From Podarcis gaigeae (lineage: Eukaryota): a stretch of DNA of 64,000 nt. Location: NCBI GenBank assembly GCA_964106915.2, contig OZ066926.1; one strand, 5' to 3'. The notes beneath the pieces are model-generated. The model ran no database searches, was not told where the DNA came from, and saw nothing but the letters and a program-made list of their open reading frames with translations. How positions within the stretch are numbered: the stretch's first letter is position 1; every line of letters begins with the position of its first letter. This document shows positions 2,573 through 61,258 of the stretch, piece after piece. The position numbers were made by a program, and so were the translations under genes.

Positions 2573-2858
2573 TTACCACTTCCTGCAATGCCTGAGGAGC
2601 CTCTCTGCCTCATCCCTGCAGTTGATGGTTCTGAGCACATCAGCTGTCACCTGCACGGCATAATCCCCTGTATAGAAATTCAGCAGAAGCCGGCTCAGGT
2701 CCACCACATCTGCCTTCTCCAATGTCCCTCGGGGGATGTTGTCACAGCCTTTCTTAACAGGAAACTCATGGAGCTTGAGCTTGAACTTCTTGAGTTCGTT
2801 CTCTTGCAAGTTCTCCAGGGTGGACACCAGGCTGTCTGTGATGGTCTTCTCCATCCAT
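2573..2858 (-). CDS. Gene A C-terminal PYD exon
   Basis: LVSTLENLQENELKKFKLKLHEFPVKKGCDNIPRGTLEKADVVDLSRLLLNFY is an ASC-like PYD. Its phase-2 acceptor is reached through the 70-nt exon 4235-4166. Confidence 0.92.
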
Positions 2859-5800
2859 CTGCATTGTCACCCCCCAGAGGCAGGAAAAAACAGACATGCT
2901 CTCAAGATTCAAAATGGACCACCCATCTAAAAAGGTTGGTGACTCCTGCTTTAAATACTGTGATAAAGGATTGTAAGCTACATTTATGAAAGCAAATGTA
3001 AGTATGCCTTAAAAAACAGTAACAAAAGTAGAGTATTCATTGTGGGATGTGAAACACAAGAGCAGTCAAGTACAACATTCCTAGAGTGAACATGTTTACA
3101 CATGGGGAGGGATGTTTGTCCAGCCAGCAGGTAAACTTCCTGTTTCCTTCTGGGCTGGGACAGACTTCCTCTGCATGTGACTAGAGGTGGGTGTGGCCTC
3201 ACCTGTGCAGGTAATGACAAAGGCACAGAGCAGGGCAGCCATCTCTCTCTCTTTCTCCACATGCATCAAAGAAACAGCATCTACTAAGCCAAAGATGCCC
3301 TCTTGGCTTCCAGCCAAGAGAGGACAGAGGGACTGTCTTCTTAAGAGATAGACTCCAAATGTATATTACTTCATTAAGCCTAAGTCTGCCTTCTGGGATC
3401 TGATTGTGAACAGAATGTGAGTAAACTCTTTTTATACTTTTGTAAAAGACTGTGTCGTCCCTTCTATTTTATGAGGGAATAAGGGGAAATTACCAGAATA
3501 GTTATTATAGAGGCTTTAGGGAGCGTAAGCAAATGCAGCCGCTGCAAACTTAAAATAAAGGGGAATGTTACTCTGCTGAAATTGTGGAACTTGTTAACAC
3601 AAGTTAGATAAGTATATAATCAGACAATATATCCTCTCCTGCATCCCTGAATATTCCCACATTCATCCCATCATACCTTTATGGATTAAAATAAATCAAG
3701 AATATAATGTTACATTTATTTCATTAAAACATTTTTCTGGCTGGCTTTGTACCACATCAAAATTACCATAACTAGTGGGATACAGTTCAAGGCATTGTTA
3801 AAGAGCAGAGTACAGGTAAATGTTGGCTGGGGTTAGGTGAATCTGCAGTGGTAGATAAAAGCTCCAGCCATAAAGAAATTGGTGCTCCCTCCCTCCCCAT
3901 TTGGTGGAATCTCTCTTTCTCTTTTTCTCTTTCTCTTTCTGTTTCTCTTTACAGGAACACACATATCTGTCTTCAGAAGTGTTCACCATACATGCAGTTT
4001 CCCCGAGAATTTATCTGAATTCTGAGTAACGACTTTCAGAGCCTCCCCATTGCTTCCCATCCTCCAATACCTGTTGCCCACCTGAGGCAGCTGCTTCACT
4101 GTGCCTAATGGCAAGATGGGTCTTTTTTGGTGAAATGGAGTGGGGGAGAAAGGGTTAAGCCTTACCTGCCTTCCACATTATGTCCAGGGTTAGTTCTGCT
4201 GAATGATGCATTGGTTGGTGTGCAGCCACAAGCCCCTGGGAAGGTGAAGAGGGAGGGAATACATACAAAGCAGGCAGGGACAACGAATAAAATGAGCATG
4301 GTGGGAGATGAGCCCAAGACTTCCAAATCACATCCAAGTTTCTCTTGGATATGTTAAGAACTGATACTCAATTTAATATGGAAAAGCTCACACTGTAAAA
4401 CTTCAAGAGAGGAATTCAATGTCAGCAAAAGCAGTTCTGCTACTGTTTCATCAGCCCTCTGTGCTCCTATTGGGAGGGAAGTGGGATACACATACATGCA
4501 GAGAAATAATTAAAACCTGCTCACCTTGTGCTGGGTGTGGAATAGGAGAATCCATCTCCTCTGAAATTAACTCTCCTGAAATAGAATAAGAAAGAGGCAG
4601 TCAAAGAGGGAACGTGACCCGTGGTCCTTTTCCATCCTGCCTCCTAAGATATGACCCAACCTCACGATCTTCCCTTGATTAAAACTCACTTCGTTTCAGA
4701 TGTGCCTCCCAAACAATTTCAGTCGTGCCCTTCTTCATCAGGTAGAAGTTGAACTTGTCTTGCATTTGCTCAGCAGACAGTTCTACGTACTGCTGCAGTT
4801 TCTCTGCATCCAGGTATTGAAACTTCAGTTCCTGTGGGAAAGAATGAAACCTCTGTAACTGGCCATTGCAAGGAAGACAAATTAAAGGGTGAAGAGGGAT
4901 TCTGGTTGAATTTCTCCCATTCTCAGACTTCACAGTTTGACTCTTCCCCATCATATTTGTCTCACCTCAGGATAGACTGTGACATCCTCTGAAGCCTTCA
5001 AAGATACCTGAGAACCAATCATCAGCGGTTTCAGGGTCACAGGGGGTTTCTCTATTCTCTTTGAATTTACTTCACGCTTTTCGACCGCCTGGGAATGGCA
5101 AATAAATTCACTTTTTAGATATGCAAAGAGGGAACCAAACTTCTTGAAGACCGGATCCCTACGACCTTCTTGACACCGTAACACCAGCTAAGGCAGGAAT
5201 GGGGAACCTGATGGCCTCCAGATGTTGTTGGACTCAAATCAACCCCAACCAGCTTGGGTCAGGGATGATGGATGCTGTAGTCCAAGAGCATCGGCAGATA
5301 CTCAGATTCCACATCTGCAGTATGAAGAAAATTAAACCACTATGGCACCAGAAACTACACTACTACAAGAGCTCTTGAACTGGGCAGCCTGAACTAAGCC
5401 TGAGCAAGTTGGCAGAGAGGTATCAGCAATCCTGCGTCCACCTGCATCTTGTCTTGATGAGACCATGCAGGAAACCACAGAAGCCATAAAACCTCAATAT
5501 TTGAATGAAGCATCAGAAGGCAATTTTAAGAAAAGTTCAGATTGAGAAGGTAATATGATAATGTGCTTTATCTCCCATGTGCCAACACTGCAAATCAGGA
5601 AGAATGTTTTTCCTCAAGAGTTCTTACAGACAGTTCATAATTATCAAGCTGATTCCTTAATAAACCAAGCTGAATTTGTTCATCAATAAATCTGAAGGAA
5701 TAAGCCTTATTTATTTCAGTGAAGGCTTCCAAGAAAATGTGCTTAGAATTTTGTTTTTACAAGTCAGTGACAACAACGTTTGTTTACAGAACCAGACAGG

Positions 5801-8800
5801 ACATTTGGCCTCTAGCAAGCAGGCTGGCTAACAAAGGAAAAAGGTGTATTTCAATATTGCAAACTTCACTTTGAAACAAGAGTGTTGGTGAGAAGCTAAG
5901 TCACCCGGTGGAGGGCAACTGTGAATCTTCTCTCTAGTAGCATGTTGATGTTGGCTAGAAGTTTGGTAAAACAGATCAAGTCCAACGAAGATAAGTACAG
6001 TATAGTTCATGCACCCTAATGAATAATTTTGCATAGGTATTCTCTCATGGTTAGAGTGATCAAGCAAAAGATCCAGGTAATCTGCAACACCAATCAAAGT
6101 TGGAGATTCCAAGTTACCTTTACTATAGAAGGGTCATTTGGCAGGAGGTACAGGTGAAATGTTGGTGTTTCCAGTCGAAGTCTCTGATAGAGCAGTACGA
6201 CAGTGTTGATCTTTTGCTTAAACCACTTTTTGAAAACGACTCCAAGGGAAGAGAACTTGGGGTTTTCCAACACAGCATGGTGAGGCTCCACTCTGTCTGG
6301 CTTCTCCAGCCTCATCTCCCCTTCCACAAAATGTGCAATGAAGACATGGGAACTGTCGTCACCTGTAAAGACAAGCATGTTAGCAGTGGGAAAGTGAAAC
6401 TTAACCCCCCCCCCCATTTCAGGTCCTGCCAACCTAGCAGTTCGAAGCACGTCAAGTGCAAGTAGATAAATAGGTACTGCTCCAGCAGGAAGGTAAACAG
6501 CGTTTCCATGCGCTGCTCTGGTTTTCCAGAAGCGGCTTAGTCATGCCGGCCACATGACCCAGAAAAACTGTCTGTGGACAAATGCCGGCTCCCTCAGCCA
6601 GTAAAGTGAGATGAGCGCTGCAACCTCAGAGTTGTCTGAGACTGGACTTAATTGTCAAGGGTCCTTTACCTTATTATTTCACGCAAACGTTTGTTTTCCT
6701 ATTGTCTTTTAAGAGGTTTATAATGTTGTTCCACAGGACAATATGATCACATGGCAGCTTACAACAGAATGCAAATCAAAGAAAATAATAAAACAGCACA
6801 GTTGAAACATTTTGAAAAATTACAAAAGACTGGAAAGCCAGCACTACTGATTTCTAGACTCCACAATGCAGGCCCCATAGCATTCTGGAAACGTCAATGG
6901 AAGTTATTCCTGTTTCGGATTCCTCCTATTATGGTTATAATGCTGGGAACTTTCCCCCTGCCATACCTTCAAGACACAAGAAGTGAGGGACGTGAATGGC
7001 GGCCACAGCTTCTGCTGCATCTACTTTAATGTTGAGCAGAGGGCCAGCGACATGCAACTCCTCAGTGGTCTGTTCTTCCAGGTGCTTAGGCCATGAATCA
7101 AAGTGGTATGTTATGGTCACAGCTTCTTTCACTTCACATATGAGATCCGTATCTCCACAACGGAAGGAGCCAGCCTCAGTGGTGCACACTCTGAATGGCA
7201 CAAAGAGAAAGATGAAAGGGGAATCAGGTTGAACATTGTATTTGAGAGCAGAAGCAGTAAAGGAGTCTAGAAATGTTGTGAAATGCTGAAAAGCTGCAGA
7301 ATCATTTAGCATGCGGAATCACTGAATCCTGAGGATGAGTCATTCTTTGTATAAATATTGTATCTGTTTGGAGGCAGACTCAGCGTCCCTGGTGTCTATG
7401 TCTGCAGTGACTCTCTGAGCTTTGTGAAGCCTGTGCATGCTGAAGACTCTGTGTGACTCTAACTCTGTGTATGCTCTAAAGCTAACTTAATCTTCTGTTC
7501 ACTATGCTGTGAGAACCAGTGTGGTGTTGTGGTAAGAACGATGTACTCGTGATCTGGTGAACCGGGTTCACGCCCCCGCTTCTCTGGGTGACCTTGGGCT
7601 AGTCACACTTTGAAGTCTCTCAGTCTCACCTCACAGAGTGTTTGTTGTGGGCGAGGAAGGGAAAGGAGAATGTTAGCCGCTTTGAGACTCCTTAAAGGGA
7701 GTGAATGGCAGGATATTTATTTTAGCTCAGTAAAACTTTTATTCTTTTACTGAAGAAGATTCTGCATTATTAATTTACGCTGCATGTCAAACATGAATTG
7801 GGAGAACTTCCACACCTGGTCTAATTGATATTTTTGCAGGAGATGCTTCACACACTGAGTTATGGAGGTAAAATATTGACAGAAGGACATCTCCTGGTCA
7901 AGCATCACTCAACTGAAGCACAACTGCTATGAGGCCACCCAAAAATTTAAAAAGGTGGTTTTTCTTATACAGAGAAGGTGTTTTTAAAATGGTGCCTTCA
8001 TGCAGAGCAAAGCAAGCTGGTGAAAGTAACTACTCATCTTCTGTTTACCCTTGTGTTGATGATACGAGATCATCAGGGAAATTTCTCATACTCGGTAACC
8101 ACGGCAAGAGTTCAGTAACCCATGCACCCATTTAGCTCTAAACACCAGACCAAAAAGCACACTGCTTTAAAGTGTTTGGGAGGGAAACCATGCAGGCCAC
8201 CTTGAACTCCTTGGAAGAAATATGGGGTATAACTTAAATCATATCAATCAAATATTTTTAAGTGTGCGAATGTTCAGGGGTGCAGGAGATGGTATATTGT
8301 GAGATTATATCCTAATCCAATTTGTGCTAGCAAGTTCCCAAAATATCAGCAGAGTTTATAACATTCCCCTTTAAATTCGCAACGGTAACGTCTGCACAGG
8401 TTCGCTAGAACCTCTATAATAATTACTCTGGTAATTTCCCCTTTTGTTCCCTCTTAAAATACAAGACACAACACAGTCTTTATAAAAGTATAAAGGAGTT
8501 TACTCACGTTCTGTTCACAATATGATCCCAGAAGGCAGACACACTTAAAAAGGTTACATACATTCAGAATCTATCTTATAGCAAGATAGTCCTATCCTCC
8601 TCTCTTGGCTGAGAGCCAAGAGGGCATGTTACTCCTTCAGAAGATGAATATGAGAGAGAGAGATGGCTGCCTGCCTTGTGCTTTTATCATTTACCTGCAC
8701 AGGTGAGCCCACACCCACCTCTGGTCACATGTGGAGGAAGTCCGTCGCCAGGAAGTTTACCTGCTTGCTGGACAGACATCCCTCCCCATGTTTTAACATG

Positions 8801-11800
8801 TACACTCTAGGAATGTTGTCATTGACTGCTCCTGTGTTTACATCCCACATAAAGAAGGAGAAACAACAGTTCCTCAAAAAAAATGCAGAGTTCCATATTT
8901 TTCACTCTCTTGGAAATAATAAGCAACAGCAATGCTCCAAGGTAATGATTTTCCAACTGTATTTGAGGGACCCAGGAGTTCCTCAGTGAAGAGATCAGGA
9001 CTGGTGGGTAAGCTTCCTTCAGAGAGAATTTGCCCACCATGGCCAACTGTTCATTGCAATATGCAAAACATACTGTAGATGTACTCTGTGTATGTTTTAG
9101 GGAGCACCACCACATCTGATGACTGTGAGACCCACTGAAACCAGATGTGCTCTGTGGAACAATTAAATGTAAAAACCGTTCCCTGAATGGAAAAGGTTTT
9201 TAAATGTCTGATGGAGAGATCACTCACCTGTATGCTTCGTTGCCCCTTTCTGAGTCCCAAACCACCTCTGGCTCTATTGGGCCAGCTGCCTTGAGTGGAG
9301 TTTGATCCAAATCTGTAAAAGGAAGACAATTATTTGCCTGATGACTGTTGCAAGGAGGAAGTTAGGTGAACTGCCCTTGAAGTTTAAGAACTCGAAGTCA
9401 AACTCACCATGCATTGCAGATAGCAGAATCAGAATGGTACCTGGATGTGCCATTTCTACACATTCCAGGAACCTGCAACAAGATTGCTCCCCTCTTTCCT
9501 GGATTATACTCAGCAATTTTTCACTTTTTAAAATTTTCAACATTTCGCAAATGTCTCTGTATTCTTTCAGAGTGATGACATAGAAATAGTATAGCACATC
9601 TACAAAATGTTCAATATCCGGTTCAAGAATTTCCATTAATTGTTTTCTTCCCTTGCAGATCATCTCATTACTAGAGATTGTGGATCTTTCCAATGACCTG
9701 TGGCAGAAATATTTATTTTATTTAGGTGACAGAAGGCGGGGAGAGGAGAATTAGAACATAGTTAGGATGCAGACTGCTCCCTTACCATAAATGCCAATGA
9801 GGGTCCTTTGGCCAACCCACCAATAATTTTCTTCTGGGGACACAACCCCTCAATATTTTCTCCCCACCACTGCCCACCCACCTGCCTTCCCATCTCCCTC
9901 CCTTGGTTTGCTGTCTACCCCCAGCCAAGCATCACTCTCTGTTTCTGGCTTTCCTCCAGGAGGAGCAAAGTGGGACATAGCAGTGGGGGGGATGGTGGAT
10001 GTGAGTGTGTGGTTTGTGTGTGTCTGTCTCCTACCTGGCTTCCCATCCCTCCATCAATTGCTAGCTCCCTCTCTCTGTGTGGCACCCTCTTGCAGTGGGG
10101 ACAGCCTCCACCCAACCTACCATGGTGGCAGCCTGAGCAAAGTTGAGCATGCCTGGCCAGTGGGTGATGACAGGCATGGGCAAGGCAGATGCCTGGCTGA
10201 GAGGAGACAGCTGACGTAGGGACAGAGGGAGGCAGAGCAAGCACCCTGGCCGTGCTGCAAACACCAACACCGACTGCCTACACTCAATGCAGCTCCCTGG
10301 GTGCACACTGGCCTGACACCAGACTTAGTGCAGCAAGGGGGTGGGGGCAGGGGAAGTAGGCAGGCCTGCCCCACCCATATTTTGTTTAAGTTGGCGCCAC
10401 TGTCTCTCACACGGAATCAAACTGTTGGCCCACCTAAATTCATAGTATCAACATGTTATGATGAAACTATGCTCATTTGTCATATTATGATGAAATTGCT
10501 TTTGTAGTGTTTGAAATTGGCTTATGGGTTGCCCTCTAGCCTCCCCCCACCTCAGGATTGCCTCAAGTTTATGTGAACCATACCACTCCTTGCTGTGGTC
10601 CTTTCCTTCAACCCTCCCCCAATCTTTGGGTTCCCTGCCCCCTAGGGGTTCTTTCCCCCCAAACAAATTCCAATCCTTACCGTGCCCTCCCATCTTGTCC
10701 CTCCATGGGGCGGGAGTGAGATGATAATCCCAGCCAAGCTATCCTGACTCTGAGCCATTCACTGATGACCACTTTGTCCCCCAAGCAACTGGAAAGTTCC
10801 CTGCCCTCAGACCAGCTTAATGTGACATACAGGGCTGGAGGGTTAAAGGTCTTTCAGATACAAAGAGTCATTTGCTGGGGAGGCTCTAGCTCTTGGTTTC
10901 CTGCTTCAAGCAGCAGCTGGACTAGAATAGATGGCCCACTGAGTTCCCTCCAAGTCTGTTATTCTATGACACAGGCAGGATACCTGCAGCCAGTGGACCA
11001 CAGGTAGCCCTCGGATGCACTCCCTGGGGCCTTCCAAGGCCTATGGAGCCCTGCCTCCATCCCCCAGCTGCTAAGCCTTTAAAGTATCTGGCAACCTGCC
11101 AGCATCAGTGGAAAATATACACTTTGGTTTTCCTGCCCAATGGTTGACGCAGAAAGTGGGAAAGGTCCAAAATAGCAATTTTCAAAGTATTTTTTCCCCA
11201 AGCAGGGGCACACACACACATTTATTAAATTAGTGCTAAAGCATTTTTGTTTCAAGCAGGAAAGCTTGTATTGTTTTAAGATTAATGGATTTTACGTTTG
11301 TTTTGGATTGGAAGGGTTAGCTGAGAGGGGAAAACATTGGTATAATTGTAGCTAAAGTGGTGGCTTCAGTCAATTATATAAGTACAGAAATTACCCTTTG
11401 GTGGCTTTTTCTGATGGAACCAGTTCCTCCAGAGCTTGATTAATTTTTGACGACAAGAATTCAGCTGACCGGTGCCTTGAAACATGCATTTTGCAAAGTC
11501 GCTCTGCTGCTAGATATTGAGAAAGTGAGTGCATGTCAACAGCTTTACTGAGTCCTTGCCGCTTTCTACATATTTTTAACCATTATTTGGCACTGACACA
11601 CAAATTTGGCATTGTATTGCATGAAAGACAGCATTGGTATAGAAAGGATTCACTTCCGTCTCATACAGGTCAGTCTGCCATTTTGGGTGACCTAAATCTT
11701 AATGTGGAATGCATACTTCTTTCCAACACTATTTTGGCTGTTAATGTCATGGGTGACATACTGACGACACAAAGGCAGACAATACCAACAAGAAAGAAAA

Positions 11801-22885: not shown

Positions 22886-23166
22886 TCATTGCCCTTCCAG
22901 GTCTTTCACGAGATGTGGGTTTTTGGCCTTCAGAGCCTCATACAGCATTTCCTTGCACCGGAGGTCCCAGCTTGGCACAAGCTTGTAGAGCTCTCGCATC
23001 TTGTCTGGGTTAGTTTCCTTGGCAGTGATTCTTTGGTATTGCTCCTCACTGAGGACGGAGCCATACAATCTATCCAGCACCGGTTCCGCTGGGGTGGTCC
23101 GTTGGATTAGTGCCTCCCTGTGCTGCTCGATGAAGTGCACGTTGGAAGAGTTTGGAAACTCCGGCC
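22886..23166 (-). CDS. Gene B C-terminal CARD exon (ASC/NLRP1-type CARD)
   Basis: [81 protein letters not shown]. Confidence 0.95.
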
Positions 23167-41300: not shown

Positions 41301-44300
41301 TTGCATACATGAGTATAGCACCTCCCTCCCTAAGCCAGGCAGAAACTTCCTGGGCTTTGGGAAGGGGCACCAGGTCTCTGAAAGGATGCTGAAGCCCTGC
41401 TGCCTTCTTCCCAACGTCAGGCGAGCTTTGAGAAGGGGACGGGAAGGCTCTTGCACCCATCAGAGTAATGTGCCTCTCTCCCTAAGGCAGGCAGGAGCTT
41501 CCTGGGCTTTGAGAAGCAGGTGCCAGGAGAACACTTAGGAAACTAGCCTCTTCCCCCAAGTCCACTGACCACATGCCACTGTCCCTCTTCTGGTTCTGGG
41601 AGACCAGTGGGGAAGGGAGCTTGTCGCAGCAGGAAGGAGAGACTCCCCAGGCTTCTTCAGCAGCCTGCCTCACATCTGTCTCCTGGCCCACCTCCTCTCC
41701 AGCCTCCACTTCTGCCTCCGATTCTGGACTGCTCTCGGCCACAGCCTCTCCCTGCTCAGTAAAGTACCGTATTTTTCGCTTCATAAGACACACTTTTTTC
41801 CTCCTAAAAAGTAAGTGGAAATGTCTGTGTGTCTTATGGAGCGAATGCCTACGGATGGTGGGGGGATCCTGCTGCAGTCACGAGCTGAGCCGGGGAGGAG
41901 GGAGAGAAGGAGAGCCCGCTCACTTTAAAGGAGCAAAGTGGGAGAGGAAAGGAGCTGCTTACATGAGTGTAAGCGGCTCCTGTCCAGTTGGCTGCTTTAA
42001 AGCGAGCGTGCTCTCTTTCCCTCCTTCCTCCCCGGCTCACCTCACTGAAAGGTTCCTTCTCCACACACCCCACGCATGCTCCTTGTCCCTTCAGTGTTTT
42101 TCCTTCCCGCCCCACTTAAAACGTGGCTACAAAGCACGGATCCACATGGACCCTCAGGGTTTTTGCATTGGGTCACCCCAAATTCACCATCAGATCAGAT
42201 CACATAGTATGTCCATGGCTACAGCCTGCACCAAAAAAAATCACACACTCACTGTTGCCAGGGGCACAAAAACGTGGTTACAAAGCACTGATCCACATGG
42301 ATTCTCAGGATTTTTGCATTGGACTACCCCAAACTCAACGTCAAATCATATGTCTGCGGCCACAGCATGAACCACAAAAATCATACATCCACTGTTTCAT
42401 TCAGAATATTTTTTCTTCTTCTTTTCCTTCTCTAAAAACTAGGTGCGTCTTATGGTCCGGTGCGTCTTATGGAGCGAAAAATACGGTGCCTCAGTTTTTT
42501 AACGTCCCTGTTGACAAACATTTTGGTTTTCGAACTGCATAAACCCAAGTAAATGCTTCGGTTTTTGAATACGCCTTCAAAGTCAAACAGGAAACGCAGC
42601 TTCCACTGAGTGCAAGTTATTTGTTTCCCTATCTGCAAAGAGTACCTCAGTTTTTGAATGTTTCAGAACTCAAATGGTCTTCCGGAACAGATTACGTTCA
42701 AAAAGTGAGGTACTGCTGTATTTATTTTGTTGCAAGCTTTTTTACCTGCCATACCTGCGAGACACAAGAAATGAGGGAAGTGAACAGCTGCCACAGCCTC
42801 TGCTGGATCTGCTTCAATGTTGATCAAAGGCCCAGCGACAACCCAGTCCTCCATGTTCTGTTCGGCCAGGTGCTTGGACCATGAATCCAAGTGGTAGGTG
42901 ATGGTCACAGCTTCTTTCACCTCAAATATGACATCAGTATAAAAGCAAAGGAAGGATCCAGCCTCCGTGAAGCATAGTCTGAATGGCACAAAGGGAAAAT
43001 GGAAAGAGAAGTGGATTGAACACCAGCCGGACACCCTCTGCATCTTCCTGATGGGAAGAAATCCCCACTCCAAACCTGCCCCCCCCAAAAAAAAACTTCC
43101 AGGGAGGAAGACGAGGAAGACAGTATGGGGGGGGGTCTTTGCTCTCCTACTTTTAAGGCTTGCCAGGTTCTGGAAGATGGAGGGTCTGGAATGCTTTCTA
43201 ATGATAACGTGTTAGCTGTGCGTTGCTCTGGCTGTCCCATGATTTCCCAACTTTTCCTCTCATCTGCCTCTGAGCTGTGACCTCCCTCAAACCGCTGTTC
43301 TAAATCTATACTGTCTTCCTCTTCTTTCTCCCTGGATGGTTCGGGGGGGGGGGGAGACGGTCTCCGCCACTCCTCCTCTGCCCAGTCCCTGACACAGATG
43401 TAGTTTGGGAACGTTTTAGAGAGCACCACCACATGTGATGATTGTGAAACCTTCATGTACCAAATGTGCTCTGCTGAACACTTCTCTGAAACCTAAAAAG
43501 AAAATCAACTTTCCCTTAAAGGAGAAAGCTCTGCAAGATCTGAGAGAGACTTTGCTCACCTGTATCTTTCATGACTTGTTTCTGAGTCCAAAAACACCTC
43601 TGGTCTGATTGTTTCTGGAAGATCCTGTTACAAAATAATTTATCATTAATATGAGCGCCAGACCCCTTTTCCACCTGAAAGCAGGACATTTCTGTCTGTT
43701 TCTAACACCCATATGACCACACCAAGGAGCACTGCTTGAGGTCAAACCCACAAATCCAAATATAGCTACTTTGTTCTGCATTCATTTTGGCCATAGTAGT
43801 TCTCACTCAGGTCTTACAGTTTCTTATGAAAGGTTTTTTCTTTCACCTCAGCAGTATTCCCCCTGTTCCTTACAGAGAGCCCCTGCACAGGTTTCTCCCA
43901 ATTTACATTTAAGGATCTTTTTCTTTCTGTTTCATTTTTTAAAAAAATTAAAAATTATTGAGTTTATTTACAACATACACACACACTTGTCAAACTGGGC
44001 ATGAAAATAATAATACAGGTACAGAATCAAAAGAGAAACAAATAACAAATAGAAACAACAAAACAAAACAACACAAAACAAAACAAAAAAGTACAAATAA
44101 AACATGCTAACGTATGAAAACTTATACAAAACAAATAGTCATACACACACCGTATTTCAGTTCTTTTTTTCTTCCAATTGACTTCCTTCATCCTCAACAC
44201 GGTTCTTTTATTGTTTTTGGTAAACCATCTCCTTTTTAGTTCATTATTACCCCTTTTTCTTTCTGTTTTTAACTTAAGTGCCATAAACTATTTTGCAGAA

Positions 44301-47300
44301 GTTAATCGAAACAAGTCAAAGTATTAATTTGAATGCACTGCTTTTTAATATATTCTCTGTATTTTACTCATTCTTTTTGGAATTTTTGCTTGGGTTGGTT
44401 TGACTCCTAATTGCCTCTGTCAATCTGGCCAATTCAATATAATCAAATAATTTGTCTTGCCATTCTTTTTTTGTTGGGATTATTTCTTTTTTCCAATTTT
44501 TGGCAATTAGTGTTCTTGCCACTCCCGTGGCATAAAAGAATATTTTATTATTTTCTCTGGCAATATCTGTGTCTAGTTTCCCCAATAAAAACGCGCCTGT
44601 TTTCTTAACAAAGTTTTGTTTAAACCGTGATATCTCAGAAGCCTTTGATTTTATCAAGTTCAACACATATGTATAACACATATGTATTTGTTACACCGCC
44701 AACACAGATTTGATTTTGTTTTATACATTTTACATATTTTTAAAAAGGCAAAGGACCTCTTACAGTTAAGTCCAGTTGCAAACTGGGGTTGCGGCGCTCA
44801 TCTCACTTTACTGGCTGAGGGAACCGACATTTGTCCACAGACAGTTTTTCAGGCTCATGTGGCCAGCATGACTAAGCCGCTTCTGGCGAAACTAGAGCAG
44901 CACATGGAAATGCCATTTAACTTCCTGCTGGAACTAGCACCTTGACATGCTTTCAAACTGCTGGGTTGGCAGGAGCTGGGACTAAGCAACGGGAGCTCAC
45001 CCTGTCGTGGGGACTTGAACCGCCGACCTTCTGATCTAGGCTCAGTGGTTTAGACCACAGTGCCACCCGTGTCCCTTTTACATATTTTGGTTGGTGTTAA
45101 ATACCATCTGTAAAACGTTTTTATTAAATTTTCCTTTATCGCTCCACAAGCCATAAATTTCCAACTCTCTTTCCATAATTTTCCCCATGATGATAATTCG
45201 ATAGTTTTACCTATATCTATAGCCCATCTAATCATTACCTGTTCGTCCTTCTCCTCCCACTCCAGTAGCGTTTCATAAATTTTAGAAGTTACCTTGGTCT
45301 TATTTTGTAATAATTCTTTATCTAGTAATGAGATTTCCTTTCAAAAGCCTCTTTTCTTGTCTGCCTTGAACACTTCATTTAGTTGGTGATACTGAATCCA
45401 CCCTGTTAGATCCACCTTATTTCCTTGTAACCTTTAATATCAGCTTATTTCCCCCCCTTTTAATAAATCCTTTTATGTAGCCCAATTTAGTTCCTTGTTT
45501 TTCTTTTTTACCGTTATCGCTTGTAAGGGTGAAATCCACCAGGGTGTCTTTGGTTTTAGTAGCTCTTTGTATTTTGCCCATACTCTGTATATCGATTTTC
45601 TTATGATATGATTGGTAAATCCCCTGTGAACTTTCACCTTTTCGTATCCTAGATACACATGCCACCCATAATTTGAAACAGCCCTTCCCTCCAATGATTG
45701 GTATAATTTGAAATAAAAACATCATTTTAAGCAACACGTTCATTTTTACTACTGATATCCTGCCACAGAGTGATAGTCTTAACTTATTCCAGATCTCCAG
45801 ATCTCTTAATTTCTTTCCAAATTTTTGTATCATTATCCTTAAATAGGTTACTATTTTTGTTTGTTAGCCATATTCCCAAGTACTATTGTTTACTATTGCC
45901 AAACCTGATATCTTCTGTAATTCTTTTTTTTCCTGCACAGGTTTCTCCCTATTAACATTTAGGGATCTTCCTCTTTCTGTTTCACTTTAGACAGATCACA
46001 CTAACACACACTGCCCACATGAGTATCCTGAGATCCCTCTCGGCAGCCATTCTCCCTCCTCTCATGCAGAAAGAGAAGCAGAAAGACAGTTGAAAAAGAC
46101 AGTTACTGGAATAACAGTTGGAAGAGAATGGAATGCCTCTCTCATGTGACCCACAGCGAAAGGAACGCGTGCGCCCCTTAAAGTACACAGTCATTTAACA
46201 TAAGAAAACATCTCCATTCCAGGAAATGGGAATGCACTGCCACAGAATAGGTCTTCAAAGAGGCTCTAGTCTGTGTTCAGACGGACTCATTCTGTCAAGT
46301 TCGTTGTAGTCACCCTCTCTCATGTTTAATCATTACCAGCTCCCTAGAGAAGCAGGCGGCTGGTTTGGCTCCAGTTCCTGAGCAGGGACACTCAGAAGTA
46401 ATCTGTCTGGCTGTGTCTTGCAATTTAGAATGAAATGTCTCAACAACAGCTATACACAACAGCCACCACCAGAACCTTAATTGCAATAAACTGGAAAGGG
46501 GCAAGGGTTCCAACGAGAATGGAATGACAGAATAAATTACTAGAATATGAATAAATGGCACAATTGACTTGAGAGGTAATACAAAACAATCATTTGTTCA
46601 AAAATGGGACATGTTTAAGATTTATTAACAAAAATATAACAGCGGTGTGACACCTATGGCTGCATTTGAGTGACCCTTGTGTAAAATAATAACAAAGAAA
46701 TAAGAGAAATTGGTACAATATGTTGTAAGAATGTATTAGAAAATATAAATAGATGAAAGTAATAAGTACACTCAATATTAGAAATGTTAAATGCACTGGG
46801 AGTTGACGGGAAGTCTATTACACTTTAGTAAGAATGTTGAACTAAAGAGATTGTATAAGATCAAATCTTTTTTATCTGTATATTTACATAAGATTACTTA
46901 CATAAGATCGTTTTTTGTTTGTTTTTTGTTATTTATGAAACTCAATAAAGCATTGAATTGGAAAAAAATAAAAATAAAAAATACTTTTTTTCACCCCAAG
47001 TGCTCAGAAAAATCTGTCAAAATCTTTCTACAATTTCTACTTTTAGTTAAGTATTTTTATTCATTTACTTGATTGGGTGGAGACAGCTGCCCCACCCCCA
47101 CCCCCCCACCCCCCCCCGTCTGGGCCCATCTGTTCAGCCATTTACCTCACAGGGACACAGATTACACACAACACTTTCCCCACAAACTGCTGGGTTTTCC
47201 ATCTTGCTGCTTCTTCCTTCCTCTGCAAATAGGGGAGATTCTGACTTCAGCCCTGAGGGGCCTGTCGCCTTGAACAATTTTTTACCCGAGCCTGTAAAAG

Positions 47301-48497
47301 ACAATTCTTTACCTGACACGACTGTTGCAAGGAGGAGGAAGGCAGTTGAACTGTCCTTGAAATTCAGAAAGTACTCTAAGTCAAACTCACCATGTACTGC
47401 AACTAGCAGAATCTGAATGGAGCCTGGATATTTCCTTTCTACTTGTTCCAGGAACCAGCAACAAGTTGCCTCCCCCCTTTCCTGGATCATATTCAGCAAT
47501 TTTTGACATTCCTCCTTGAAGTCTTTCTTTGCTTTCCACAAGTCCCTGTATTCTTTTTGTGTGATAATAAAGCCATAGTATAATTCATGTAAAAAGAATT
47601 CTAGGTCCTTTTCAATAATTTCAAGTAATTCTTTTCTTCCCTTGCAGACTATTTCATCACCAGTGATAATGACTCCTTCCAGTGACCTGTGGCAAAAACA
47701 TTTATTTTATATTAGGCATTGTTGTGGGCAGAGAATTAGAGCTTGATTAGGATACAAGCTGGGGCTTAATTTTTCCACACCTAGTATACTGCCTTCACTG
47801 ATCCTCTGAGCATGCTAAGCTCTGCTTTTCCTTTGCAACCTGGAAAATATGTTGATTTGCTCCACACTGAAAAGAAATCATGATGTAATTTGCCACCCCT
47901 TTTTTAATGGCCAAGAATATACACAGTTTTCGTGATACATTTTGCACTCCTCTCTAGGTTTCATCCAAGGCAGGCACCCCTGCTGACTTTGTTATTATAT
48001 GTTCTACATGCAGACACAGCCAGGCTGCCCATGAAGAGGGGAGGGAAAGCTGTCGGGGGGGGGGGGAGGCATACCTGGACCCTCCTAAGAGGGGTGTCAT
48101 ATCTGCCTGCCACTGCCTCTGTGACCAGCTCTTCCACAGACCCTCTTGCTGCCTCTCCTTCTCCATCGACCGCTAACTCACCACTTCCTCCTCCTCCTCA
48201 ACAACAACTGCACATCTGCCCTTCCTTGCAGGTCTCTATTTTGAAAATGGAAGTGTTACAACTTCATCCACACCCCTAAGGAACAAGGAAGGCAAAGTTG
48301 TAATAGAGTGATTTTCAAAATGGAGACCGGAAAGGAAGTTGTGTGGCAGGTGGTGGGTGGGGGTGAAGCTGCGCTGGTGGCCTGAATCTGCAGCAGGGAC
48401 TCAAACCAGTCAGCTGCCTCTCTTGTCCATACTCTTCCATCTTCCTGAGAAAGGAAGATGTAGCAGCTGTGCCTCCCCCTCTCCCCTCTGGGCTAGG

Positions 48498-48531
<34 letters not shown>

Positions 48532-51500
48532 GCTGATTGGTCTTGGCTGTCAGGTCCAGCTCTGCCTCCTCTTTCAGGTAAGGCAGCCTCCTTTCCACCA
48601 GTAGAAGGCAAAAGCCACTTCTTGGGGCGGGGGGAGATGACAAACAGGCAACTCAAGGTTCGATTTTAGGTTTTTCTAAAGGTGAAAGAGGGAAAACCTT
48701 TTTCCCCAGGGCAGCTATAAATAATGGATTTTAGAAATATACTGGCAGGATAATGGGGCAGTCTTTCTAGCAGAAAGAAAATTTGGCTTGCTTATCTACC
48801 AAGTTAATAAGAGGCTTCAAAGCGACTCATTAGCTTGACTGTCCATCTTCCAGAGCCCACCACCCACAGATCTGGATTCTGTATACATTTAGGTGTTGAA
48901 TTTGAAAAGGGGGGGTAGTGTCTGCATGTATGTACATAACATGCATTGTGGAAAAAGATTGCCACCTCTGGTTAAAGACCCCTCTTAACTGCATGAGATT
49001 TCCCATTTCTTTTTCCTCCTCCATGAGAGGAGCAGAAGCTGATCTAGGAAGGATGCTTCTAAACCAGAGTCCTCTCTCGCCTCAGCTCCCTCCTTCAGTC
49101 ACAATGGCTGCTGCATCTTTGGTGGCTCTCAGATTTCCTTTTCCATCACAACTTGGCTCAGACCCCTGACCCAGCACTGCCCCACCCACAGCCGGGCAAG
49201 GGTCTTCCTGGCCACTGATGCTGCTCCTGCCACTGCTTATCACTGGTTCGGCTGCTGAGAAGGAAGGCAAGAGGGAAAGAAAGGAGACAAGTGTTTTCCG
49301 TGCGTGTGGGTGTGTGCATAAAGAGAAAGAGAGAGAGAGCCCCTTAGCAAACTACAATTCCAGGGGGAGAACCAATTTGATTTGCCTCAGGCGCCGAAAT
49401 GTCTGGGGCCAGCCCTGCATGCAAACCATGCTGCACAATAATAAGCAGAAGCTTGAAGTCATAGAAATGGCCGAGACGTTGCCCTCTGGACTCACACACA
49501 AGCCTTTCTCCAAGGCTGCTTCTCCCGTTCCCCCATCCATCAGGTTCCTGAGGACCACTGAACTACTTCTGTCTCTTTACTAGTACACCAACATCGCCTA
49601 GCAACCCCGTGCCTAGGAAGTGATACTTATCACTAAATCCCTTAGCACTGTCCATTCCAGTGACACATTTGCCCATCCTTTTTCCTGGATGAAGCTCCCT
49701 CCCAAGCTAAGATCTGATTCTCACACCATCCAATCAATGCTCTTCCCCTGTAAGCTGCAAGTAGAATTGCAATGGGACTTACCACACATTTTTCTTTCGT
49801 ACATTCCTCTGCATATAAGGGGGCATGACACTGTCAACTGTGGAAAGGTAAGGGAGAGGTCAAAACTGGCTGTTTTATCCCTGCCCCCAGCAGTCTTTTG
49901 CTATATTTAATTAGCACCGGTGCATTTCTTGCTGGGTAAGCACTTTTTCCTTTAACCATTGATGTTTGTGTGACACTAGCCCTTTGGAATTCCAGTGGAT
50001 ATCATACTGTAAAATGTATATGAGAGAAAGAGTAGGGGCGAATGGTCAGTTGACACTTAACAGCTCTAGTCCTGACAACAAATGGAGTAGAACAAGGGTG
50101 CTTATTGGCACCCCTACTGTTTAACATTTATGTAAATGATGTAATAACTAGAACTAAAACAACCAGAATTTTTTCCTGTTACACTTTTATCCCATAAGGT
50201 ATCCATCTTGCTATATGCCAGCAATATGGTGCTATGAGAACAAACACGTGGGTATGAGGAGATTACTAAAGAACTTTAGTAGTTTGTCCTAACAAAGGTT
50301 TGAATATAAATTATTCCAAGACAAAAGCTGTAGTATTTGAGGCACAGCCTGTGAAGCATAAATGGTTCCTAAATGAACAAATAATTGAACAAGTGAGACA
50401 TTTCAATTATTTGGAGATTTGTTCTCCGATAAAAGTACTTGGTACCATATAGCAGCACTTAGGCCTTGAAGACATCAAGATCTGCACAAGCAATTCTTAA
50501 TTTTACCAGAAGCAAAGTCGGCACTGAGAACAAATAATGGTTTAGGTGCTCCCACAGTTAACGTATTGGGGAGAAATTAATTTCTAATAACACTACTCGG
50601 TTTATCCCCCCCCAACTCCAGCAGCTAGTATTAGAGCAGAAACAGGAACTATGCCAGTACAGTGTCAAATTCCTATGGTCTTATTTAGGTATTATTTTAA
50701 GCTCTGTAATATGGAAGACTTTTTGTGGAGCAACAAAAATTACAACAGATTTATTGGGAGAGATGTGTGGCTCGGGCACGCTGCAGGCTGATTTGAAGGA
50801 AGGTTAACCGAAAGTTTATTGTGGGGTGGAAACCCAGTTCCTGATTTATAATAATCATCTGACATCATCCTGTAATAATGGGCATGCAGCATGTTCAGCA
50901 GACAGCCATTTGGAGACTGTGCTGTAGTGGCAGAATTGAACAGAAAATCGTGGGAACCTGCTTATACCATCATAAAGCATGGAAATTCCTCCTCCTCTTC
51001 CTAGAGGAAGCTATTTGCAGGACATTCTGCAGGCAGCACCTCCAGCTGGATGACCAGGGAAGAGCCATGGCTCAGTAACAGAACACCTGCTTTGACTGCA
51101 GAAGGTCCCAGGTTCAATCCCTGGGGTCTCCAGGTAGTGCTGCAAAAGACTCCTGCCTGAAACCCGGGAGGGCCACAGTCAGGCAAGATTAGCAATCCTG
51201 AGCTAGATGGACTATGAGGCCCATTTGGGACCTTCCTCTGTTCCTGGCCTGCAAACCTTTGAACTTACAGGCCTGATTTAATTTTTTTTGCAGGGCTCAA
51301 GCAGGAAAGAAAAAAGGACTTGCCCTTCTACAAAGGGACAAGCTCTACCCGAGTCCAAAAAACGGCCTGCCATTGTACTTAAGGCTGATTCTTTGCCACT
51401 CTGTGTGTCCTAAGGGCGCTGAAGGTGTTTGTAATATTTTAAGCAATAGCAACCAGACTGTTGAAACATACCAAATTGTTCCATATGCGCTAAATGCCTG

Positions 51501-52206
51501 GCGCTAAAGTAAAGCTACTTCCCAACATTCCAAGCAGATGGTTGTTTTTCCTTCCCTCCTTCGCGGCTGCAGCTCAGCGCTGGGCTGGCGCAACCAGGGG
51601 TGGAAGGATCTGGTGTCAGACTGAACGGCTGCGAAGGTCAGGATCCAGCAAAGACTTACCTTCCCTGACGGAGAAGAGGAGACTGTCCGCCTCGTACTTG
51701 CAGTCAATGGCCCTCAGCGCATCGGCCGCTACCTCTACTGCGTAACTTACGCCGTAGTAGCTGAGCAGCAGGTCTCGGAGGCGAGAGGCGCCTGCCTTGT
51801 GCATAGCCTCTTCGGGGATGCGGACGAAGCCCTCCTCGAGCGGGATCTCGGGCAGTTTGCGGCGGAACCTCCGCCTCTCGTCCCGACTCAACGTCCACAG
51901 CGAGAGTTGCAAGGCGCGAACGACAGGGAGCAGAGCGAGATAGAGATTCTCCCGCTCAGAGAGAGACTGCGGGGCGACCGACTGCTGCAATCGCCACGTG
52001 TTGGGGTCCCTGTCGTCGTCGTCGTCGTCGCTGCTGCTGCTACTCTGGAGCAAACCCTTGAGCCATAGGGACGTCTGCAACTTGAGGAGGGGATCCACCT
52101 CCCTCTCCCCCTTCTTCTCGGTGGACCGGCCGGCCTCTTTCGCCTTCAGCTTCTCGCCTCCTTCCTCCAGGGGCTCCTTCGCCCAGGGGTATTCGGGGGT
52201 CGCCAT
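35059..52206 (-). CDS. Gene C: acidic N-terminus-PYD-CARD-FIIND-PYD protein
   Basis: Exons 52206-51660, [unresolved phase 1->2 exon(s)], 47686-47391, 47291-47146, 43624-43560, 42978-42755, 40949-40690, 39838-39713, 39540-39399, 39284-39234, 36941-36872, 35344-35059. The chain from 47686 onward is phase-consistent; the link to exon 1 is inferred. Confidence 0.72.
36040..36305 (-). mobile_element. L2 LINE 3' fragment
   Basis: LRSSAEGLLAVPSL motif; adjacent (AAT)n tail. Confidence 0.7.
37350..37690 (-). mobile_element. L2 LINE 3' fragment
   Basis: LTFKALNGLGPVYL...RAFSIVGPALWNALP. Confidence 0.8.
37880..38722 (+). mobile_element. Rex1/Babar-like LINE 3' fragment
   Basis: KRAQQRLYFLRIL...FYHCAVESVL...RNSFYPNAI; tail gacaataaagattatcgtatcgtat. 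Confidence 0.75.
39399..39838 (-). CDS. Gene C UPA exons (39838-39713, 39540-39399)
   Basis: QRIDKPPWTLRPLTIG and EVEFQYLDADKMQQYVEL...ELIWEAHV. Confidence 0.9.
40690..40949 (-). CDS. Gene C FIIND autoproteolysis exon
   Basis: [29 protein letters not shown]|SPRG...[14 protein letters not shown]. Confidence 0.92.
41767..42486. mobile_element. Non-autonomous Tc1/mariner-type element
   Basis: TIR CCGTATTTTTCGCT...AGCGAAAAATACGG after a TA dinucleotide. Confidence 0.8.
42755..42978 (-). CDS. Gene C FIIND ZU5 exon
   Basis: EAGSFLCFYTDVIFEVKEAVTITYHLDSW...VAGPLINIEADPAEAVAAVHFPHFLCL. Confidence 0.92.
43935..45930 (-). mobile_element. Degraded L1-clade LINE with a nested Sauria SINE (~44745-45075)
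   Basis: LSLCGRISVVKMNVL, KTPWWISP and ARTLIAKNWK fragments. Confidence 0.82.
47391..47686 (-). CDS. Gene C CARD-like exon
   Basis: KGRKELLEIIEKDLEFFLHELYYGFIITQKEY...KLLNMIQERGEATCCWFLEQV; homologous to 9697-9408. Confidence 0.78.
50040..50900 (+). mobile_element. Old degraded non-LTR RT fragment
   Basis: NGVEQGCLLAPLLFNI and HFNYLG-like remnants. Confidence 0.5.
51660..52206 (-). CDS. Gene C exon 1: low-complexity N-terminus plus divergent PYD
   Basis: ggcgccATGg Kozak context in a CpG island. LQLSLWTLSRDERRRFRRKLPEIPLEEGFVRIP...LRDLLLSYYGVSYAVEVAADALRAIDC; donor G|gtaagt. Confidence 0.82.
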
Positions 52207-58622: not shown

Positions 58623-61258
58623 TTACTCAGTCTCCGAGAGGGAGATGAGCCTCTCTGCCTCAGGCCTGCAGTTGATGGCTCTGAGCACCTCAGCCGCCAC
58701 CTGCACAGCATCTTCCATGTAGTAACCAAGCAGCAGCATGCTCAGGTCCATGACATCCGCCTTCATTAGCTTCCCTCGAGGGATGTTGCCATAGCCACCC
58801 CAATCGCTGAGATTGAGCTTGAACCTCTTGAGTTCATCCTCATCCAGATTCTCCAGGACGGACAGCAGACGTTCTCTGATGGTCCTCACCTTCACTCTGC
58901 ACTGGCGCCTCCAACAGCAGGGAAAAGCAGACACAAAACAAGAGAAGCTCAGCAAAGGGATATGAGAAGGAACTACATCAGGAGGTGCTGTCACCTTCCA
59001 TGACTGTGACTGGCACTGAGGGAGGGGAAAGAGGGGTGGCCTGAAGTTGCTTTGAAGCTTAGAGAGCCATCTTTGATCAGTGATTCAAGGTCCAAGCAAC
59101 ACAATGCTGGGATTGGAGCTAAACCACCTCCTGCTCTGAGGGGAGCCTTGCATGCAACCGATATTTAGAGAGATACCCAATTTAGCTTCTGTTGACCTTA
59201 CACATTTGCATGTTGCTGCTCCTCCAGCAACAGCAGTGCAGCCAATGCCTAAACAGCACCCCCCAACATCTGCTGTCTGCCTGTGGCAGCTGCTGCATTG
59301 TCCCTAATAGCAGGACTGGCTTTGTGTGAGGAAAGGGAATGTCAAGCCCTACCTGCTTTCCATACCATGCCCTGAGTCAGTGCCACTTGATGCAGCATGA
59401 GACCGAGTGCAGGAAGAAGCACCTGGAAAAGAGAAATTTAGTGGATAGGTAGGCAACAAGGAGGGATTATGGGAAAATGATAATTATGGGACATGAACCT
59501 GTGCCACACTTTCGGGTCTCAAATTATAGCAGCGCATTGTGCAACATCAAAATTTTCTAGCCCCACTTCTCACCTTCCATTCTACATTATAGCAGTGTGG
59601 GGTGCCAGGGGGCATAAGCCCCACTTGCACAATTTTTACAGGGACCAAACCAGAGACACAGTGATCCCTGTTCCACCCTGCCTGCCGTGGGGGTCTCCCA
59701 TGATCCTTCCTTTCTTCTGTGGGAAGAGAGTGGCCATTATGCCAGCTTTTAAATCCATGAAAACTTTACCCACAAGGCCTCTACCCTGGGAAGAAAGCCA
59801 CTTTTTAGGACTCTGTGCAATAACCCTTACTGTGTACTTATATTGCCACTTCATAACAAACGTTCTCTAGCTGGCTCACAAGGGGGGGGGGGGGGGAAGC
59901 AACAAGAACACACATTAACATGCAGTTAGAAAACCAGTTAAACCCATTAAAAACAATATTTTAACAACTGACGCTAAGTTGAAAACTGAGAAGCCTAGGC
60001 TGTAACACATACCAGGAGAAATCACGCCCCCATTCAGGGATCTCTGTCTGACCCTGCCTGCTGCCGGAGGTTTCTGTGCTTCCATTGGGAGGAAGGTGAG
60101 ATTTAAGTATGAGGAAATAATTAAAACCTGCTGACCTTGTGCTGCATGTAGAAGAGGAGAAGTCATCTCAGGGGACTTTAACTCTTCTGAAACAGAATAG
60201 GAAAGAGGCAGTCAAAAGAAGGAATGTGACTGGCATGTCCTTTATCACCCTGCCTCCCAAATTATGGTCCAACCTACTGATCTTCCTCCATTCAAACTCA
60301 CCTTGTGTCACTTGGGCCACCCAGATGAGTTTATTCTTGCGCTTGTCCATCACACAGAAGTTGAATGTGTCTTGCATTTGCTCAGCAGACAGTTCCACGT
60401 ACTGCTGCAGCTTGTCAGAATCCAGGTATTGAAACTTCACTTCCTGTGGGGAAACATTAAACCAGGGGTTGGGGGGGAAAATTAGCCATGGACTGGTCCA
60501 CTGTCCCTCAGAACTTGTGGCAGGCTGGAAAAGTGACACCGGGGGGGGGGGGGAGCTGGAAGAAGATGCGAGGGGGGCAAGTGGTCCTCCTCCCCACCCC
60601 CAGCTTACCTTCCCTGGGGCTACTACCACTGCTGCTTCTCGTGGGTAGGCAGAGTGAGCTTGTCCACTCCACTCTCTGGCTCACAGGAGCACCAGTGCAG
60701 CGGCAGCGGAGGGAAGATAAGCAGTGCAAAAGGGCTGGCTCTGGAGAGGGGCTGCTTAAAATGTCAGTCAGCCAGTTCAGTCTAGCCCCCTTCCTTCTCT
60801 AGGCAGGGTGGGGAGAAGCCAGGAGGAAGGAGGGAGGAGGGGGTGCCGCGGTATGTGTGATAGAGAAGGGCGGGGATGGAATGGCGCTGTGGGGGGATGG
60901 CACAGTCCAAACGAACAGAATCCCCACGCTGATCCACGGACAGTCCATGGGCTGGATCTTGAAGGCAATTGGGCCTGATCCATCCCGTGGAACTTAGTTT
61001 GCCGACCCCTGCATTAAACCTTATGTGGGATTCAAATTAAGGGGTGATGAGGGATCTGGTGGAGTCCCCTCCATTCTCATACTTCACAGCCTTGGCTGTG
61101 CCCTAGCAAAGCTTTTCATCATCTTTGTGCCTCACCTTGGGGCAAACTTTGGCACCATTTGTCTCCACAACGAAGCGACAGCCAATTCTCAGAGGGCTCT
61201 GAGTGCAGGGGGGCTTCTCTATTTTCTGTGAATGACTACGTTCATGATCATCAACCGC
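58623..61258 (-). CDS. Gene D 3' part: UPA exons, linkers and C-terminal PYD (5' exons outside the window)
   Basis: Exons 61258-61136, 60443-60302, 60186-60136, 59422-59353, 58896-58623. Same sizes (123/142/51/70 nt) and phases as gene A, open frame. PYD reads IRERLLSVLENLDEDELKRFKLNL. Confidence 0.85.

Follow-up and report, generated by a model that had tools for sequence, protein, structure and literature searches.

A tandem cluster of NACHT-less FIIND genes with PYD or CARD tails in the lizard Podarcis gaigeae

CARD8 bypasses ASC, and human NLRP1 recruits ASC through CARD-CARD contact. Both proteins are cut in the FIIND (ZU5-UPA) between a Phe and a Ser; a His and a Glu are required, and the residue before the Phe matters little (PMC3210808). 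In NLRP1 and CARD8, the UPA is attached flexibly and makes filaments form at a lower threshold (PMC7794386). A functional-degradation model has been set out for such sensors, and FIIND-death-fold extensions are described as widespread "booby traps" in non-mammalian vertebrates (PMC8679799, review). ZU5-UPA followed by a death fold is likewise found in PIDD, UNC5, fish GBP-FIIND-CARD proteins, and FIIND-Death clusters. Here, a stretch of 64,000 nucleotides (nt) from Podarcis gaigeae contig OZ066926.1 was analyzed over its whole length (the window, which has no N runs). Its minus strand carries four FIIND paralogs, A, B, C, and D. Three of them (A, C, and D) end in an ASC-like PYD, unlike the characterized FIIND inflammasome sensors found, all of which end in CARD; the fourth, B, has a CARD tail.

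Human CARD8 shares with these genes the absence of NACHT and LRR, a ZU5-UPA FIIND with the His, Glu, and F/S residues (the slash marks the cut), and a short linker exon preceding the death fold of the tail. Its layout is essentially that of gene B. It differs from A, C, and D in ending in CARD, from A and C in having only a disordered N-terminal region where these have a folded PYD or CARD before the ZU5, and in a linker of 17 residues compared to ~40 in the lizard genes. A PYD tail should, unlike CARD8, need ASC. The best Protein Data Bank (PDB) sequence match of the FIIND exon is NLRP1 (E value, 7e-17), above CARD8 (8e-10). In the comparison with NLRP1 (human, rodent, and fish), an N-terminal PYD that is not the effector is also shared, and the Ser-Pro after the cut in C is as in NLRP1. 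However, NLRP1 has a NACHT, an LRR, and a C-terminal CARD, whereas the tail of A, C, and D is a PYD and A, B, and C are without NACHT and LRR. ASC (PYCARD) is a PYD plus a CARD in ~190 amino acids (aa), compared to FIIND proteins of 426 to 756 aa here with one ASC-type domain per tail, and separate intact ASC genes exist in lacertids. As regards a POP-type, PYD-only layout, the tail exon of A holds an ATG, and a PYD-only model of it exists in P. muralis; the tail exons of C and D are without ATG, and no CpG island lies upstream of any of the three. The lizard genes are of the NLRP1/CARD8 kind and, by the defining features of the two families, members of neither.

A published record close to this design is an anole gene, LOC100556846, labeled "Nlrp1-like" at the PYCARD locus in the Fig. 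4 legend of PMC13076529 (2026). It has a PYD and a FIIND but lacks NACHT, LRR, and CARD. In the accessible part of that source it is a passing mention without domain order, mechanism, family, or test, and its preprint (bioRxiv 10.1101/2025.06.19.660630) takes it as an odd PYCARD ortholog. Anolis models retrieved here have a C-terminal PYD; their identity with LOC100556846 is unconfirmed. The phrase "C-terminal PYD" in PMC10565642 was ruled out as a precedent, as it means a domain missing from zebrafish and mouse NLRP1. The strings "FIIND-PYD" and "UPA-PYD" were not found in the literature searched, outside which most subscription journals fall. The FIIND-PYD architecture is thus on record yet appears uncharacterized.

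The PYD exons as tails of the FIIND genes

Splice phases, CpG islands, RNA contigs, and separately made gene models give good support to the view that the PYDs are tails of the FIIND genes. First, an exon-by-exon phase walk through A, B, C, and the visible part of D showed that every intron has AG/GT borders and that all coding exons are free of stops. In A, C, and D, a 51-nt exon of phase 1-1 and a 70-nt exon of phase 1-2 link the UPA to a PYD exon that is entered in phase 2. In a scan of the span between the 51-nt exon and the PYD exon, the 70-nt exon was the sole open phase-1-to-2 candidate in D, and one extra candidate was found in each of A and C. A preliminary description, made from the letters of this stretch, had proposed these micro-exon links and the membership of the PYDs in the FIIND genes, and all nine of its junction coordinates proved to be exact minus-strand splice boundaries. 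The tail exons match Pfam PYRIN (E values of 1e-23, 3.5e-22, and 3.4e-18 for A, C, and D, respectively), and the exons 5′ of the tails match FIIND and UPA-FIIND, exon by exon in A and C (PF13553 and PF23679). ZU5 precedes UPA in A and C by Pfam and in B by alignment to A; D shows UPA alone in the window. The family had also been called NACHT-less, and no NACHT or LRR exon lies within the open exon chains of A, B, and C, nor were these domains found by Pfam in the orthologs. Its further description as ending in a PYD rather than a CARD is right for A, C, and D and wrong for B.

Second, CpG islands occur at first exons only, with observed/expected (o/e) ratios of 0.62 to 0.83 compared to 0 to 0.25 upstream of the tail PYDs, and in C and D the tail PYD domain does not open with an ATG. 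A role of the tail PYDs as first exons of the next gene was ruled out; other PYD exons, which lie in CpG islands, are the true first exons.

Third, RNA contigs follow the predicted path in part. These come from four runs, in three studies, from a close relative, the RNA nature of the runs being guessed, and they skip four FIIND-region introns exactly. In run X2, one contig connects 4522 to 2851, that is, the 51-nt exon to the PYD (letters between unshown), and in run X1 the joint 2579/1987 takes the A PYD exon to a 31-nt last exon, in agreement with the C terminus of Podarcis models. An intron-containing contig begins at 2833, and we infer, assuming k=31, that this is the branch expected if the path through the 70-nt exon enters the PYD exon. 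At the 51-nt exon there is also a loose RNA end whose letters agree with the beginning of the CARD exon of B, so CARD-tailed transcripts are made too. Some contigs join 4574/4575 to 4700 with 10 to 11 other letters between, probably because of B-type paralog sequence and not of an alternative donor.

Finally, independent P. raffonei and P. muralis models have domain orders identical to those of A and C, full-length models of the same order exist in Podarcis and Zootoca, and many annotation pipelines give the same join; the window exons are mostly 80 to 98% identical in protein to Podarcis and Zootoca orthologs. A frog run (SRR16343634) holds an intron-free 694-aa ZU5-UPA-PYD frame on a single 4.2-kb contig, 84% identical to a Lithobates model. 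On that frog contig (L002:3-1886), a second, CARD-first open reading frame (ORF) ends 19 bases before the FIIND-PYD ORF and resembles a RING/B-box FIIND protein of Mixophyes.

Predicted function and competing explanations

Our preferred reading, to which we assign a probability of roughly 60%, is that these proteins are degradation-triggered sensors that would free UPA-PYD to nucleate ASC. It draws on the exon anatomy, domain identities, conserved residues, distribution, and the part of the splicing that was seen. The genes would be tandem, copy-number-variable, CARD8-like "tripwire" sensors beside ASC, the paralogs of which exchange their output domain. The FIIND would cut itself and both halves would remain assembled, with the N-terminal half serving as bait (divergent PYD/CARD in A and C, short charged tail in B). 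Upon pathogen attack or loss of DPP9 restraint, this half would be degraded and the C-terminal piece freed, which in A, C, and D would be UPA-linker-PYD (~267 aa in A). The UPA would then cluster the PYDs, ASC filaments would be seeded via PYD-PYD contacts, and caspase-1 would be recruited. B would free UPA-CARD with a near-ASC-identical CARD, for which direct recruitment of caspase-1 is likely. The preliminary description had left out the CARD-tailed B and the N-terminal death folds, and that omission changes the mechanistic picture.

Several features are consistent with such a sensor. The His, Glu, Phe, and Ser are all present in A and B, with Lys before the Phe, and the His, Glu, and F/S are kept in 22 of the 23 aligned FIIND-PYD sequences with a readable motif. 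The A exon carrying the site (6118..6362) aligns with residues 1179-1260 of human NLRP1 and 263-344 of CARD8. In the AlphaFold model of the P. lilfordi ortholog, ZU5-UPA is followed by 38 disordered linker residues and then by a PYD of six helices, an arrangement in which the UPA of NLRP1 and CARD8 promotes filaments (PMC7794386). Its best fold matches are the rat NLRP1 FIIND (E value, 7e-25) and the PYDs of ASC, POP1, and pyrin (root mean square deviation, 0.9 to 1.7 Å). When compared with the ASC residues needed for speck formation (PMC12832225), the tail PYD of A retains the polymer residues E13, L15, K21, K26, R41, D48, and D51; the N-terminal PYDs have lost D48 and D51. The tail PYDs are under purifying selection (proportions of nonsynonymous [pN] and synonymous [pS] differences of 0.018 and 0.049 for A versus P. 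lilfordi and 0.065 and 0.144 for C versus Zootoca) and the N-terminal PYDs of A change faster (pN, 0.059 to 0.075; Fisher P = 0.009), on counts that are small and from single pairs, the first of several points that weigh against the proposal. The cleavage site of C keeps His, Glu, and Ser and has Leu for the conserved Phe (40839-40844; Phe in the orthologs), which may be a weakened allele. The tail PYD of C has Leu at R41, and that of D has Asn at K26 plus deletions. POP1 is a match as close as ASC, with the same residues kept, and the P. muralis annotation also has PYD-only genes from the PYD exon of A. As for the RNA, the 51-to-70 and 70-to-PYD joints are absent among the joints listed (26 more are unlisted), the link between the 51-nt exon and the PYD consists of the indirect contig-boundary argument plus a single contig, the shorter side of which has 36 letters, and the material comes from a relative and is RNA by guess only.

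The main rival, because POP1 is equally similar and PYD-only genes are called from A's tail exon in P. muralis, is an inhibitor: the freed UPA-PYD or the intact protein would cap or sequester ASC like POP1, and the PYD exon of A may add a PYD-only protein. POP1 is the top PDB sequence match of the A tail (E value, 7e-17), marginally ahead of ASC, and because it keeps the same residues as ASC, residue conservation does not tell an activator from an inhibitor. The annotated P. muralis products (101 to 102 aa) begin at the ATG of the A exon, RNA contigs cover the intron 5′ of that exon, and the substitutions that the tails of C and D show at R41 or K26 also speak for inhibition. Even so, an inhibitor is unlikely. 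Fusion behind an intact autocleaving FIIND, with the UPA as a clustering module, favors nucleation (PMC7794386); sister paralogs with near-identical FIINDs bear an ASC-like CARD; and the PYD exons of C and D have neither start codon nor CpG island.

More doubtful still is an adaptor, or split ASC, in which the N-terminal PYD/CARD would bind upstream sensors while co-expressed UPA-PYD (A) and UPA-CARD (B) would co-assemble via their similar UPAs as a conditional ASC-like bridge to caspase-1. The N-terminal PYDs are fast-evolving and without the polymer residues, and intact ASC genes are kept in lizards, although A has four death folds, the UPA exons of A and B are 84 to 90% identical, the B CARD is 87.5% identical over 88 aa to the P. 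muralis ASC CARD, and both transcript types occur in the same RNA run. Lastly, it is very improbable that the FIIND-PYD models are mis-joined in a tandem array and that the PYD exons belong to separate PYD-only genes or open the genes downstream. Some models are clearly mis-joined (P0151 across three copies; Zootoca P0013 across another gene), and the direct 70-to-PYD joint is missing from those listed. Against an artifact, phase-matched micro-exons recur in three paralogs, the C and D PYD exons have no ATG, the A PYD splices to a short terminal exon and not to another gene, the frog frame is intron-free on one contig, and the same domain order is found in more than a dozen species.

Organization of the four genes

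Gene A (PYD-PYD-linker-CARD-ZU5-UPA-linker-PYD) has 13 exons for ~753 aa and starts at 18454 in a CpG island (Table 1). It is syntenic with P. lilfordi across 19 kb at 90 to 96% identity, and its exon 1 matches the N terminus of Podarcis models at 84 to 87%. The tail PYD, 60% identical to the P. muralis ASC PYD, has its own in-frame ATG at 2854 and an unspliced stop at 2573-2575. Each tail PYD is followed by a GTAAGA donor, and in both A and C the PYD exon is not terminal, the donor leading to a short last exon; a dead donor was ruled out, as A splices there to the 31-nt exon, which contributes 10 to 11 residues in Podarcis models. The codon split by this last intron (2577-2578/1986) is TGA here, by which the short tail is cut off, and Gly in P. 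lilfordi and in the RNA relative. A CARD exon hidden behind the tail PYD, making a UPA-ASC fusion, was sought and not found in the sequence read 3′ of A's PYD, nor did the syntenic loci of P. lilfordi and Zootoca show one. The last long intron of A has an insertion (3040-3660) that is missing from P. lilfordi and the RNA relative, with related copies at 8263-8849 and 54110-54536.

Gene B has a 50-residue charged N terminus, FIIND, the 51-nt exon, and CARD (~426 aa with an ortholog-type first exon). Its FIIND shows 84 to 92% DNA identity to that of A, and in self-alignment the similarity peaks (92.5%) around the 51-nt exon. The N-terminal death folds of B were apparently lost, because a degenerate N-terminal CARD exon fragment lies 5′ of the gene (31385-31500) and its exon 1 resembles the region 5′ of A exon 1 and the stretch 43650-43750 in C. 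Gene C (PYD-CARD-ZU5-UPA-linker-PYD) has 13 exons for ~756 aa and starts at 52206 in a CpG island; its CARD exon is 59% identical to the A CARD frame, and its tail is 64% identical to the P. muralis ASC PYD. Of D, the window holds just the 3′ half; the ZU5 exons are beyond a LINE-like stretch at the window end, so the cleavage site is outside view.

Among the other features of the window, the block 10-1760 (3′ of A) duplicates 19077-22839 (3′ of B) and marks a tandem duplication unit; each copy holds a truncated ZU5 exon relic (~1545-1420 and 22620-22507). Decayed LINE-like stretches, identified by eye only, lie at 11500-15900 (A intron 2), 44000-46900 (a C intron), and 61700-64000 (5′ of visible D), the last with a 355-aa ORF at 62372-63439.

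Table 1. Exons and exon groups of the four FIIND genes in the window
Gene	Feature	Position	Strand	Evidence
A	Exon 1: ATG, divergent N-terminal PYD1, phase-1 donor, CpG island	18094..18454	-	Pfam PYRIN E 6e-10; CpG o/e 0.62
A	Exon 2: divergent N-terminal PYD2	16774..17046	-	Pfam PYRIN E 4e-15
A	Linker exon, phase 1-2	11395..11509	-	92-100% match to Podarcis models
A	Divergent N-terminal CARD exon	9408..9697	-	Pfam CARD E 5e-6, above cut-off
A	85-nt exon, ZU5 start	9228..9312	-	Phase walk
A	ZU5 exon	6967..7190	-	Pfam FIIND E 1e-23; RNA joint 6360/6965
A	ZU5/UPA exon, autocleavage site (His, Glu, KF/SS; Ser codon from 6252)	6118..6362	-	Pfam FIIND and UPA
A	UPA exon 2	4966..5088	-	Pfam UPA-FIIND; RNA joints
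A	Last UPA exon	4690..4831	-	Pfam UPA-FIIND; RNA joints 4830/4965, 4574/4689
A	51-nt linker exon, phase 1-1	4525..4575	-	Phase walk; RNA joint 4574/4689
A	70-nt linker exon, phase 1-2	4166..4235	-	Phase walk; also in Podarcis models
A	C-terminal ASC-like PYD exon	2577..2858	-	Pfam PYRIN E 1e-23; RNA joint 1987/2579
A	Short last exon, 31 nt	1956..1986	-	RNA joint; P. lilfordi locus
B	Exon 1: ATG, 50-residue charged N terminus, CpG island	28219..28368	-	Podarcis ortholog N termini (P0184, P0181); CpG o/e 0.66
B	FIIND exons 28120-28056, 26862-26639, 25915-25671 (KF/SS), 24833-24711, 24546-24405 (position range includes the 51-nt exon)	24011..28120	-	Phase walk; alignment to A
B	51-nt exon	24061-24011	-	Phase walk
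B	C-terminal CARD exon and stop	22886..23166	-	Pfam CARD E 1e-20
C	Exon 1: ATG, low-complexity N terminus and divergent PYD, CpG island	51660..52206	-	Pfam PYRIN E 2e-11
C	55-nt linker exon, phase 1-2	49783..49837	-	Located via P. muralis ortholog linker
C	Divergent CARD exon 47686-47391 and 146-nt exon 47291-47146	47146..47686	-	Pfam CARD E 6e-4, below cut-off
C	FIIND exons 43624-43560, 42978-42755, 40949-40690 (NL/SP), 39838-39713, 39540-39399	39399..43624	-	Pfam FIIND/UPA
C	51-nt exon	39234..39284	-	Phase walk
C	70-nt exon	36872..36941	-	Phase walk
C	C-terminal ASC-like PYD exon, no ATG at start	35063..35344	-	Pfam PYRIN E 3.5e-22
C	Short last exon (coding part, end R-N-stop)	34434..34440	-	Zootoca model end
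D	UPA exons 61258-61136, 60443-60302	60302..61258	-	Pfam UPA-FIIND
D	51-nt exon	60136..60186	-	Phase walk
D	70-nt exon	59353..59422	-	Phase walk
D	C-terminal PYD exon lacking an initial ATG; 4 codons fewer than in A and C	58627..58896	-	Pfam PYRIN E 3e-18

Distribution and exchange of tails

The distribution was sampled with one FIIND exon as the query, which gave at least 177 relatives, and domains were mapped on these and on cluster members. A PYD follows the FIIND in models from lizards (three Podarcis species, Zootoca, two Anolis species, Pogona, Tiliqua, and Elgaria, the last with a CARD following the PYD), turtles (Mauremys, Pelodiscus, Chelonia, Dermochelys, and Carettochelys), frogs (Mantella and Lithobates), and a fish, the grouper Epinephelus. 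By these models, the design is widespread and not lizard- or lacertid-specific. None was seen in birds, crocodilians, or mammals among the matches listed, the names of which were looked up for part only. The models are named CARD8-like, NLRP1-like, or uncharacterized. The preliminary description knew of no characterized tetrapod protein of this kind; no functional study of FIIND-PYD proteins was found in the literature searched, and the architecture itself is common in annotated lizard, turtle, and frog proteins. In the Atlas, FIIND clusters carry PYRIN, CARD, or Death, and those with FIIND plus PYRIN have 79 to 138 members, with the domain order not given; the cluster at rank 4 is a 171-member chordate cluster of FIIND plus a Death domain. 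A FIIND is combined with a URGCP/very-large-GTPase domain in Lerista P0015 (by Pfam) and Pogona P0032 (by name and length). Epinephelus P0131, Tiliqua P0038, and Chelonia P0035 show serial FIIND-PYD units or 5 to 8 CARDs before FIIND-PYD, extreme forms that may be partly mis-joined models.

A FIIND tree of 51 hand-picked regions (22 with PYD and 29 with CARD tails; ortholog proteins, quick method, no mammalian CARD8 row) suggests that tails were swapped repeatedly. The tail label requires 14 changes on this tree, of which at least 9 are forced by starred branches, a count that mis-joined gene models can inflate. Shuffled labels gave a mean of 16.8 changes, and 45 of the 500 shuffles were as low as 14. 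In each of grouper, frogs, Pogona, Anolis, and lacertids, PYD tails neighbor CARD tails. A good example is A and B themselves, sister FIINDs with different tails. In P. muralis, two of the three A-like copies are PYD-tailed and one is CARD-tailed, and in P. raffonei, a single locus has isoform models with either a PYD or a CARD tail.

We infer that ASC may have been the donor or exchange partner of both PYD and CARD tails, because the tail PYDs are 56 to 64% identical to the lizard ASC PYD and the B CARD is 87.5% identical to the ASC CARD. In P. muralis, ~100 kb separates the cluster from ASC, and both are on one strand. In a PYD tree, the lacertid tails form one starred clade, and those of other species are scattered among ASC PYDs. 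A single origin of all tail PYDs was considered; the 92 columns do not resolve it, and one clade is not rejected (approximately unbiased test, p-AU of 0.215 and 0.266). P. muralis has two divergent ASC-like proteins (P0263 and P0270), which could give the tail PYDs a choice of adaptor partners. As far as the literature searched goes, recurrent tail swapping and ASC-derived tails are undescribed. More broadly, and at slightly less than even odds, the FIIND tripwire could be a plug-and-play chassis in non-mammalian vertebrates, in which fast-evolving N-terminal baits are combined with ASC-derived PYD or CARD tails that are repeatedly swapped by linker-exon recombination, and the signal is routed via ASC or straight to caspase-1.

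FIIND inflammasome sensors with functional data, as far as found, all signal via UPA-CARD. A natural UPA-PYD, if true, would mean that the UPA can cluster death folds of any type as a general platform, and it would connect functional degradation with the PYD-PYD route of NLRP3, AIM2, and pyrin. Since their FIINDs are closely related and their tails differ, A and B would be a ready-made pair for asking what the tail decides, such as ASC dependence or cytokine release versus death. Database names such as "CARD8-like" and "NLRP1-like" hide these genes, and surveys of reptile inflammasomes therefore probably miscount. The repeated swaps in fish, frogs, turtles, and lizards, together with the death-fold N termini, would, if true, be an animal parallel to the integrated-decoy receptors of plants.

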